Source: Saccostrea cucullata (taxonomy: Eukaryota). From it: a stretch of 64,000 bases of DNA. Below, piece by piece: positions 17,759 through 23,580 of the stretch. Where the stretch lies: assembly GCF_032062105.1 (NCBI RefSeq), contig NW_026928889.1, positions 248,001 to 312,000 of the forward strand. The letters are read 5' to 3'. The notes beneath the pieces are model-generated. The model worked only from the letters and a program-made list of their open reading frames with translations, did no database searches and was not told where the DNA came from. The position numbers and the translations under genes are program-made. Positions within the stretch are counted from its first letter, which is position 1; each line of letters begins with the position of its first letter.

Positions 17759-20700
17759 TCACACCCCCGACATTTTGTAAGTGTCATAATCTGGCACTTT
17801 GGGCTTCACAGTAAATGTCTTTTTAGGTTTTATCTTCCTCCCGTGATACCCAGTTTTACGGTGCCTCCACCCTGTCCGCGGCCTGTATCCTGACCGCATT
17901 TTCTCCCCCACCCCCTTCCACGGAATGTCATCATGTCCAGCATTAGACACTTGTCCTACTGTTGCCATACATTTGGGGTCCAGAACTATTTCATGCTTTG
18001 ATGGCATTCTTAATACAACACTTTCACCAACTTTTCTGAGTAGTTGGGCACTTGAACCCCCAGCTCTACAAATCATCCCCCCTTGACCAGGTATCTTTTC
18101 TATGTTGTGAACAATTGTTCCCATAGGAAGAGCACCTAGTGGATGTGAATTTCCCTCCATGGCTCGCACTGAAAGACAAATAAAGCATTTTTTATCCAAC
18201 AGAAAATGCATTCTATGACATCAACCATTTATTATTCATACGTGTGGAGGAAGAAAGGTTACAGGGTTATTGTAAGTAAAATTTTCCTCAGAACATTAAA
18301 TTTTTATCAAACAGAAAAATATATTTAATGGGATCATTCTTTAATTTGGGATGATTCTTGTTTTAATTATCTCAATATCTGTGCAATGAAGCTTTCCATC
18401 AACATATATTATTGAATGCCAATCCTTCCATTCATTTAAAGAATCTTTGTACCTGAGATGGTAGGTATTTCCTTGCTGATTTTGACCAGGTCCCCCTCTT
18501 TCATGTTCTGGGTGGCGATGATGTATCGCTTATGGTTACCACTTCCCACGAGGGCTAGGTGAGCCGTCCTGACCGGGTCAGGCTGGATACGCAGCACCCT
18601 CTCCTCCAGGGGTTGATCTCCCTTTGTGTCCGGGTACCTGTCATCCCTCATGTACCAGTTCACTTTCGGTCCTCCTCCAATTTTGGCATTAACAGTTTTT
18701 CCTGTGTAAACATTAATTCATGAAATGAACACATATTTCTTTTACAGGACAAGAGAGAGAACTCTTTTAATAAACTGGACGTGCAACCATTAAACAGATA
18801 AAATGCCACTCAAAAAAAAATGCATGTCTCCTGATTCAATTGGGGGACAGATGATAGTGGATGATCTTTTTTTCCTTGAAACATTTATTTTATCAAATAT
18901 AATGCGATCAGATCTAACTTTGAAAATGAATATTTCAAATTAATTGTAACAATTTAATACCATTAAGATCTCTTCCACCACTCCGGATAAATGGTAGTGG
19001 TTCAGTGGTGTACTTTCCATCAGATGGTAGAATGGGGCGCCCCATAGGGACATAATAATGTGGTCTCCTTAATGTCTTGAACCTCCTCTTAGGTCTGTAT
19101 GTGTAAAGTCTAAATGATCTACAATAAAAATAAAGAAAATACATATTTTTAAGAAAACTATTCAGGACATTTACAGTTTTGTGAAATAATGCACATTTCT
19201 GGTATTAAAAATTTAGGTGATAACTACCAGGTAATAATGAACAAAATCATACTTCAGAAAATTCAAACTTCAATCAAAGAGCAAAAATATAATTATATTT
19301 CAAGTTGGGGGGGGGGGGGGTTGTTGTTGAACACCTTGGAATAAATCAGAAGGTGCTAATACAATTTTTGGTTTTTATGTTGTTGTTTTTTTCTCATGGA
19401 TAAATTGCAGACAATGTTTGCATATGAAATTTCAACATTTAAAGTCAATTTCAGCAATTTATATGAAAATTGTATCTAATTAAAGCAATTCTTTTACCAT
19501 GACTTTTAAATACATGTATCTAAATAAAAAAAAATAATTGTCTGATTCAGTTCAAACATATTTCTTTCATTCTATATCTTCATTGTACGTTGTTCAGCAA
19601 AAGATATAACCTTACAATATACACATGTATTCAAATTTAATTCTGAAACAAACAAACATATACTATTTCAAAGAGAATATTTATTCAGGATATAGCTGCA
19701 TGCATAAATACTAGATACAAGAATGATGATACCAAAATATCTTTACATTTTTACATGACAATACAAAATTCAGTAAGCAATGTTCACTGATGTATATTAT
19801 ACATTTCATTCGACCTTACCTCATTTGGGTGAATTTAAAACGGGGCGAATTCAAAAATTTCAGTATAATTTCTTAAACAAAACTACCATTAGGCGAATTT
19901 AAACGGAGCAAATTTGTTTTACAGTGTGAAAGGGCGAAAATAAACCCTGTATACAGTATATTATACATTTCATTCATTCAGAGCTGATCATGTACGAAAC
20001 AAATCATATGAAATGTACATTTTTTAAAAATAGGTATACATATAAATTTCATGCCTTCATTTCTTTTTCTTAGATTTAAGGAAAGGTTCATTGAATAGGT
20101 CAAAAGCTCTTTTGGCTTTCTGTGGACCGAATCCCGGACAAAAGCTCAGGTCTTCCTGGGTTGCCTTCAGCACGCCCTCCATCGTGTGAAACGTGTTCAA
20201 CAAGGTCATGGCATCTGTCTTGTTAACTGACCTTACAGAGGTCAAACACTCTGTGACCTTTGACATGTAGTCCTTTTCCGTTTTTTCCATGATGGCCTCT
20301 GGTGGTTTGTGCTCGTAAACTTTGTAAGTTTCCAAATAGCGCCCTGCCTCCTCTGGTGAGAATGCTAAAATTAGGGTACAGTCAGCCAAGATACAAATTT
20401 TTGCTAATTCTTTTACGAGATGATGGGGTTCCTTGATATCGACCTGCACCAATAGCACTCTGAGCTCATAGTACCTGCGTAATTGTTTCAAGCGTTCATG
20501 AATGTAGTTTGGATTAAGTTGGTGATAACGAAGACTAAGAAACAAGGCACAAGCAGTTTTTCCCATTTCATAGTCCGGAATTATTTCTCCAAACTCGTAG
20601 GGAATGCTGCGGATAAACTTAAGTATTGGATTTCCTCTTTGTCTTGAATTAACAATGATACTGTTAGAATTCAATGATTTAACAGCTGTTGGTATGCCTG

Positions 20701-23580: not shown

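Follow-up and report, generated by a model that had tools for sequence, protein, structure and literature searches.

An intronless ERCC1 gene in the first intron of MRPL2 of pteriomorph bivalves, probably an ancient orphan retrogene expressed as an alternative last exon of its host

How a core repair gene comes to lie without introns inside an intron of an unrelated gene, and how it is expressed from there, is the question raised by a locus of Saccostrea cucullata. The window analyzed (64,000 nucleotides of contig NW_026928889.1, positions 248,001 to 312,000) carries a complete ERCC1 open reading frame, unbroken by internal stop or intron, between the first two coding exons of MRPL2 and on the same strand. 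The best explanation, which we regard as probable when taken as a whole, is an ancient orphan retrogene of ERCC1 within MRPL2 that is used as an alternative last exon and translated by re-initiation after an upstream open reading frame (uORF). Coordinates and the Rad10 match bear out the sense-strand nesting reported in a preliminary description of this DNA, and the acceptor (21149/21148, 48 nt 5′ of the ATG) and a candidate AATAAA (19685-19680) were found in the sequence where it had placed them. The gene features are as follows:

23967-23997, plus strand: LSM8 exon 1 (sequence and Pfam LSM), head to head with MRPL2
23581-23966, no strand: putative common promoter and 5′ leader region
23580-23495, minus strand: MRPL2 coding exon 1, the common first exon (86 nt, phase 2, GT donor)
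21148-21101, minus strand: start of the ERCC1 terminal exon, with a 48-nt leader (acceptor AG 21150-21149)
21100-20057, minus strand: ERCC1 coding sequence, a single exon of 347 aa in MRPL2 intron 1
19685-19680, minus strand: candidate ERCC1 polyadenylation signal AATAAA (GU-rich stretch ∼19660-19645)
19118-18961, minus strand: MRPL2 exon 2 (junctions in RNA-type contigs)
18701-18453, minus strand: MRPL2 exon 3, L2 N-domain (Pfam)
18168-17759, minus strand: MRPL2 exon 4, L2 C-domain and stop (Pfam)

The reading frame of MRPL2 exon 1 is carried on by exon 2 from 19118, and exon 4 was single copy in a search of the whole assembly. On the other side, 387 nt separate the ATGs of MRPL2 and LSM8, whose following coding exon lies near 28007-28135; in the next intron, amid tandem repeats, the end of this LSM8 exon 2 and its donor recur as partial, decayed copies (28204-28290 and 28700-28760). 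Within the leader region, the 5′-most reach of a relative's RNA contig is 23669, and a GCA(C/T)ATGCGC-type motif near 23685 is also kept in Ostrea and Pecten. Downstream of a conserved GCATGCGC-like motif, the MRPL2 leader holds an AUG-started short frame (window 23662-23639) of 7 codons in both oysters and 12 in Pecten (L003 2674-2697; L010 6986-7024), which may be an extra uORF or simply a promoter element. A GT at 23643 was considered as an alternative donor in this leader and rejected, as no such junction occurs in the RNA contigs.

By its protein, the nested gene is an ordinary orthologue in the ERCC1/Rad10 family: its central domain matches PF03834 (Rad10) over positions 1-115 of 115 (E = 1.9e-47) and is followed by HhH (HHH_5), it is 52-75% identical to other pteriomorph bivalve proteins, with oyster proteins the closest named (72-75%), and its difference from the family is confined to gene structure and position. 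Protein and Pfam searches of the whole assembly returned one ERCC1 each, in both cases the window ORF. They detected no intron-containing ERCC1 elsewhere in the genome, and only four weak matches (E = 0.6-10) fell under the Pfam cutoff; these searches run exon by exon, so a multi-exon copy with short exons, or one in a gap, could escape them. Over the last 200 codons, dN was 0.028 and dS 2.2 against Ostrea, and 0.002 and 0.084, respectively, against an RNA contig of a near-identical animal (L002). The window ERCC1 is a working gene under purifying selection and not a pseudogene; conservation and dN/dS likewise rule out an assembly artifact or a recent pseudogene. The variable N-terminal region includes three 42-nt (14-codon) repeats (window 20772-20897), where relatives' contigs have extra letters.

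To establish that a junction exists, we relied on annotation and on RNA evidence in the form of assembled contigs from other individuals or a related species, in which junction contigs hold 30 nt of exon 1; junction ratios and start sites lie beyond such data. Contig L002 (run SRR26159586; RNA-type) codes for a 98%-identical ERCC1 (P0001), and its 5′ end consists of 30 nt from the end of exon 1 (23524-23495) followed by the sequence from 21148 onward. The junction 23495->19118 (GT-AG) was found in two of four RNA or probable-RNA runs of a related species. Both splices posed as alternatives in the preliminary description (23495->21148 and 23495->19118) are thus present in RNA-type contigs, and the common first exon that it had proposed as captured by ERCC1 is seen at contig level. 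In all four runs of the related species the ERCC1 contigs start at 21150. In run X3, the ERCC1 contig and the exon 2 contig each open with 28 loose letters, as would be expected of an assembled path forking after exon 1; ERCC1 contigs of runs X1 and X2 have 3-9 loose letters at 21150. No RNA contig of these four runs covers 21235-21423, none lies in the 190 nt upstream of the acceptor, which were checked against an independent intronic start, and the relatives' runs have none over 19156-19344. In a mytilid, the homologous junction of exon 1 to ERCC1 occurs in three short contigs set against the same mytilid's DNA contig: in translation, their first 30 nt resemble the end of Mytilus MRPL2 exon 1, and the DNA match runs from an AG on. 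Neither of the two observations that could have overturned the preliminary description, a canonical ERCC1 elsewhere or an independent start within the intron, was made.

Existing annotation reflects the same arrangement. RefSeq gives ERCC1 as “isoform X1” and MRPL2 as “isoform X2” in Crassostrea virginica (consecutive accessions) and in Mytilus species, and lists ERCC1 as isoform X1 in two scallops. Database models of Ostrea edulis and C. virginica merge ERCC1 with MRPL2 exons, and those of C. gigas and Mytilus edulis are over-long (P0009, P0124, P0137, P0165 set); these fused or over-long bivalve models are probably artifacts caused by the nesting. We rejected a true ERCC1-MRPL2 fusion protein, as in the Ostrea and C. 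virginica models (533-537 aa), and attribute it to merged annotation: in Ostrea the ERCC1 ORF is intact to its own stop, and no RNA contig links ERCC1 to exon 2.

Under the preferred account, one promoter, head to head with LSM8, would give one pre-mRNA. Splicing of exon 1 to the ERCC1 exon with polyadenylation within the intron would produce the ERCC1 mRNA, and splicing of exon 1 to exon 2, skipping the ERCC1 exon, would produce that of MRPL2. The common exon is MRPL2's first coding exon, and an ERCC1 mRNA that includes its AUG would carry a uORF. Joined to 21148, exon 1 reads in a frame other than that of ERCC1 and stops at a TAA (21138-21136), which is followed by 35 nt to the ATG; L002 has a TGA at the site. 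The uORF has 32 codons in the window, 33 in Ostrea, 25 in Mytilus, 31 in Pecten and 31 in Pinctada (where exon 1 is a prediction), and the first stop in the MRPL2 frame after the junction is codon 4, 4, 1, 2 and 3, respectively; it is codon 1 in a second mytilid and in L032, for which phase 2 of exon 1 was assumed. A stop no more than four codons from the junction was present in the MRPL2 frame of all seven species and in none of the 14 other frames, where the earliest stop was codon 5 and nine frames had no stop at all. When leaders were shuffled, the joint chance was ∼0.001 over five lineages (0.05 for any stop before the AUG), in a test that was post hoc and took lineages as independent, ignoring kinship. 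By eye, the ERCC1 leaders of different orders are unlike one another; they are free of AUGs, the distance from acceptor to ERCC1 AUG is 20-60 nt in all species checked, and the uORF ends 5′ of the main AUG in 7/7 species, by 10-53 nt. A stop in the frame of the host's coding exon appears to have been selected.

The early stop would point to re-initiation, because re-initiation needs it and leaky scanning would not. Ribosomes would initiate at the MRPL2 AUG, read 25-33 codons, terminate shortly after entering the ERCC1 exon and resume at that gene's own AUG 10-53 nt downstream, with a possible contribution from leaky scanning. A stop in the last exon should go unseen by junction-dependent decay (NMD). 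The ERCC1 mRNA should evade such decay because the uORF stop is 3′ of the last splice junction; an intron gained in ERCC1 would expose that stop, which may explain why the gene has stayed intronless. At 25-33 codons, the uORFs exceed the classical optimum of 13-18 codons for re-initiation, and their gap of 10-53 nt is below the optimum of 80-90 nt; efficient re-initiation has been reported in mammalian cells where the uORF had 58 codons and the gap 42 nt (PMC6614817). The additional AUGs of exon 1 also speak against this route.

It is possible, although unlikely, that the shared-exon unit exists but that ERCC1 is translated by ribosomes that scan past the MRPL2 AUG (leaky scanning) or from transcripts started inside exon 1, the early stop doing no more than preventing a junk or mitochondria-bound fusion. 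The contigs do not reveal the 5′ end of the ERCC1 mRNA, and Mytilus and the predicted Pinctada exon give the MRPL2 AUG no more than a moderate context; both mytilids have the ERCC1 AUG in frame with exon 1, so there the stop blocks a fusion. However, the window, Ostrea and Pecten give this AUG a strong context (purine at −3, G at +4), oyster exon 1 contains 3-4 AUGs beyond the MRPL2 start, and in the five species with ERCC1 out of frame, where fusion is impossible, the stop is still within four codons. We consider it distinctly improbable that oysters use a second acceptor 22-23 nt upstream to send an in-frame MRPL2-leader-ERCC1 fusion to mitochondria. Splicing to such an AG would keep an open frame into ERCC1 in the window (exon from 21170; 70 nt) and, despite indels, in Ostrea (73 nt), and predicted Crassostrea proteins read open across the same motif, but every RNA contig starts at the main acceptor, no homologous site was found in Mytilus, Pecten or Pinctada, and of the MRPL2 presequence exon 1 supplies no more than the first 28 residues.

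Re-initiation from a shared exon remains the favored route. LSM8 and MRPL2 head to head, with an intronless ERCC1 in MRPL2 intron 1, were found in Ostrea edulis, Mytilus trossulus and Pecten maximus; Pinctada has an intronless ERCC1 upstream of MRPL2 exon 2, with the predicted exon 1 1.75 kb before ERCC1. LSM8 was not called within 10 kb upstream in Pinctada (L004 1-10000), the divergent neighbor being a beta-propeller gene. In Mytilus trossulus, an additional non-coding first exon may exist, since the LSM8 and MRPL2 start codons are 4.6 kb apart (L005 1823-6474). The synteny comparison suggested by the preliminary description thus extends the nesting to Ostrea, Pinctada, Mytilus and Pecten and finds no MRPL2 near ERCC1 in five outgroups. 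In all five of these (Solemya, Sinanodonta, Ruditapes, Patella and Lingula), ERCC1 is a multi-exon gene spanning 3-33 kb in which 6-12 exon-like pieces were detected; its introns lie at common sites near residues 25, 136, 154, 187, 223, 281, 305 and 328 (window protein numbering). No MRPL2 or LSM8 match lay within 10 kb of ERCC1 in four of them, and neither was called near ERCC1 in Ruditapes; other neighbors were present. The Ruditapes gene and DNA-PKcs form a head-to-head pair 205 nt apart (L033 9796-10001), as do the Patella gene and a PRKCSH-domain gene at 120 nt (L007); ERCC1 seems to swap promoter partners often. In a quick tree (54 of 120 listed matches, most fish rows left out), pteriomorph ERCC1 proteins formed one clade (SH-aLRT 93).

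Multi-exon outgroup genes with common intron positions at other loci, together with the lack of a second copy in the genome, support the retrocopy origin put forward in the preliminary description. In our reading, ERCC1 mRNA would have been retroposed in sense orientation into MRPL2 intron 1 in the pteriomorph ancestor, and the multi-exon parent would then have been lost, leaving an orphan retrogene. A single retroposition in the stem lineage of pteriomorphs, with later loss of the parent, is the simplest account, because one event then covers both relocation and the absence of introns. The pteriomorph split dates to the early Palaeozoic, more than 400 million years ago. Neither a poly(A) remnant nor a target-site duplication is visible at ERCC1, although survival of either is not expected at such an age. 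Their absence, and a sample that includes no intermediate lineage (no arcids or limids were identified in it), would also suit a move of ERCC1 into MRPL2 as DNA with introns lost in place, e.g., by recombination with its own cDNA; this would require relocation plus loss of ∼9-11 introns on one branch, with none left in any pteriomorph examined, and we judge it very improbable.

Repeats occupy the intron and its nested exon as follows:

22794-23486, no strand: MITE bounded by long terminal inverted repeats (target duplication of 8 nt at 23494-23487 and 22793-22786)
22272-22749, no strand: palindromic MITE with 235-nt arms (repeat analysis)
∼21429-21834, no strand: older dispersed repeat (71-84% identity with other copies)
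19809-19960, no strand: small repeat of high copy number, flanked by 20-nt direct repeats, in the ERCC1 3′ UTR

The first three make up 1,577 of the 2,346 nt that separate exon 1 from the ERCC1 exon (67%), in line with the earlier estimate of about two-thirds; each has at least 39 other scored copies, from 415-1,066 first-look candidates. What needed amending was the picture of MITEs and leader: the event is ancient (three bivalve orders), and the common exon is coding, which puts a uORF before ERCC1. As the nesting is that old, the MITEs are later and incidental to the capture; they were rejected as its cause or as a promoter, being family repeats with no alignment to other species' introns. 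The 22794-23486 element is recent (95-98% identical to many copies) and inserted 8 nt into MRPL2 intron 1, leaving the donor undamaged, its target duplication being a copy of the intron's first 8 nt; its other copies also have 8-9 nt duplications, as in hAT-type elements. The 3′ UTR repeat is missing from L002 (1196-1197) and from relatives' contigs and, on this comparison, is a polymorphic or lineage-specific insertion. It is scarcely credible that ERCC1 is expressed mainly from its own intronic promoter, with the exon 1 junction a minor read-through product: the few loose letters at 21150 in X1 and X2 have no evident source, but no contig of the four runs extends upstream, every species keeps its acceptor close to the AUG, the junction lies within an assembled ERCC1 contig in two orders, and MRPL2 intron 1 varies in length and content among species.

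The design that we favor, a host-chimeric retrocopy combined with an orphan retrogene, is already known, and the locus has the tested features of both classes. The nested ORF is on the host strand with exon 1 spliced to either exon, as in the shared-first-exon class; like an orphan retrogene, it is intronless against intron-bearing outgroups, at a new position, intact, expressed and under purifying selection, with no parent in the window's assembly (one ERCC1 match only). Retrocopies expressed with upstream host exons include 13 human and 14 mouse cases, among them Taf9 in Ak6 (PMC4772013), where two unrelated housekeeping proteins likewise share exons and a regulatory region (PMC4772013, PMC7749173) and the common exons are read in different frames (PMC7749173). 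Genes and phylum differ, and in ERCC1/MRPL2 the parent is gone; the uORF feature may not be unique, as the Ak6 start codon, too, may lie in the common exon. VAChT in ChAT intron 1 (PMC7524744) also combines a common exon 1, a whole ORF in one exon, the same strand and alternative splicing, but ChAT and VAChT belong to one pathway, unlike MRPL2 and ERCC1, and the origin of ERCC1/MRPL2 can be placed on one branch. The orphan retrogenes RNF113A, MARS2 and TRMT12 (PMC4772013; PMC5470649) are likewise intronless replacements of lost multi-exon parents, and RNF113A-type genes and ERCC1 have kept an ancient core function. In contrast to the nine of ten orphan retrogenes that gained or recruited CpG-island promoters (PMC4772013), ERCC1 relies on the coding exon of its host. 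A literature search (subscription journals mostly outside its scope) found nothing relevant on ERCC1 with MRPL2, intronless, in bivalves or oysters, and no description of a core repair gene that is an orphan retrogene and has its host's coding exon as a retained uORF.

UV shifts human genes to promoter-proximal last exons (PMC5332558). Because the promoter-proximal last exon here is that of ERCC1, we raise as a hypothesis, and a doubtful one, a conserved damage switch in which slowed transcription would favor the ERCC1 last exon over MRPL2 and the selected uORF would set the level of ERCC1.

The ERCC1/MRPL2 unit is real, expressed and ancient, and was already implicit in annotation. It provides a placed, long-lived case of a core repair gene that has neither promoter nor introns of its own and exists as an isoform of an unrelated gene, so that tolerance of such captures becomes testable through re-initiation, escape from decay and last-exon choice under damage. 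Oyster and mussel annotations place ERCC1 and MRPL2 under one locus or in a false fusion protein, so that bivalve stress studies that count expression by gene can confound the two. For Pteriomorphia, the nesting of ERCC1 in MRPL2 is a rare genomic character.
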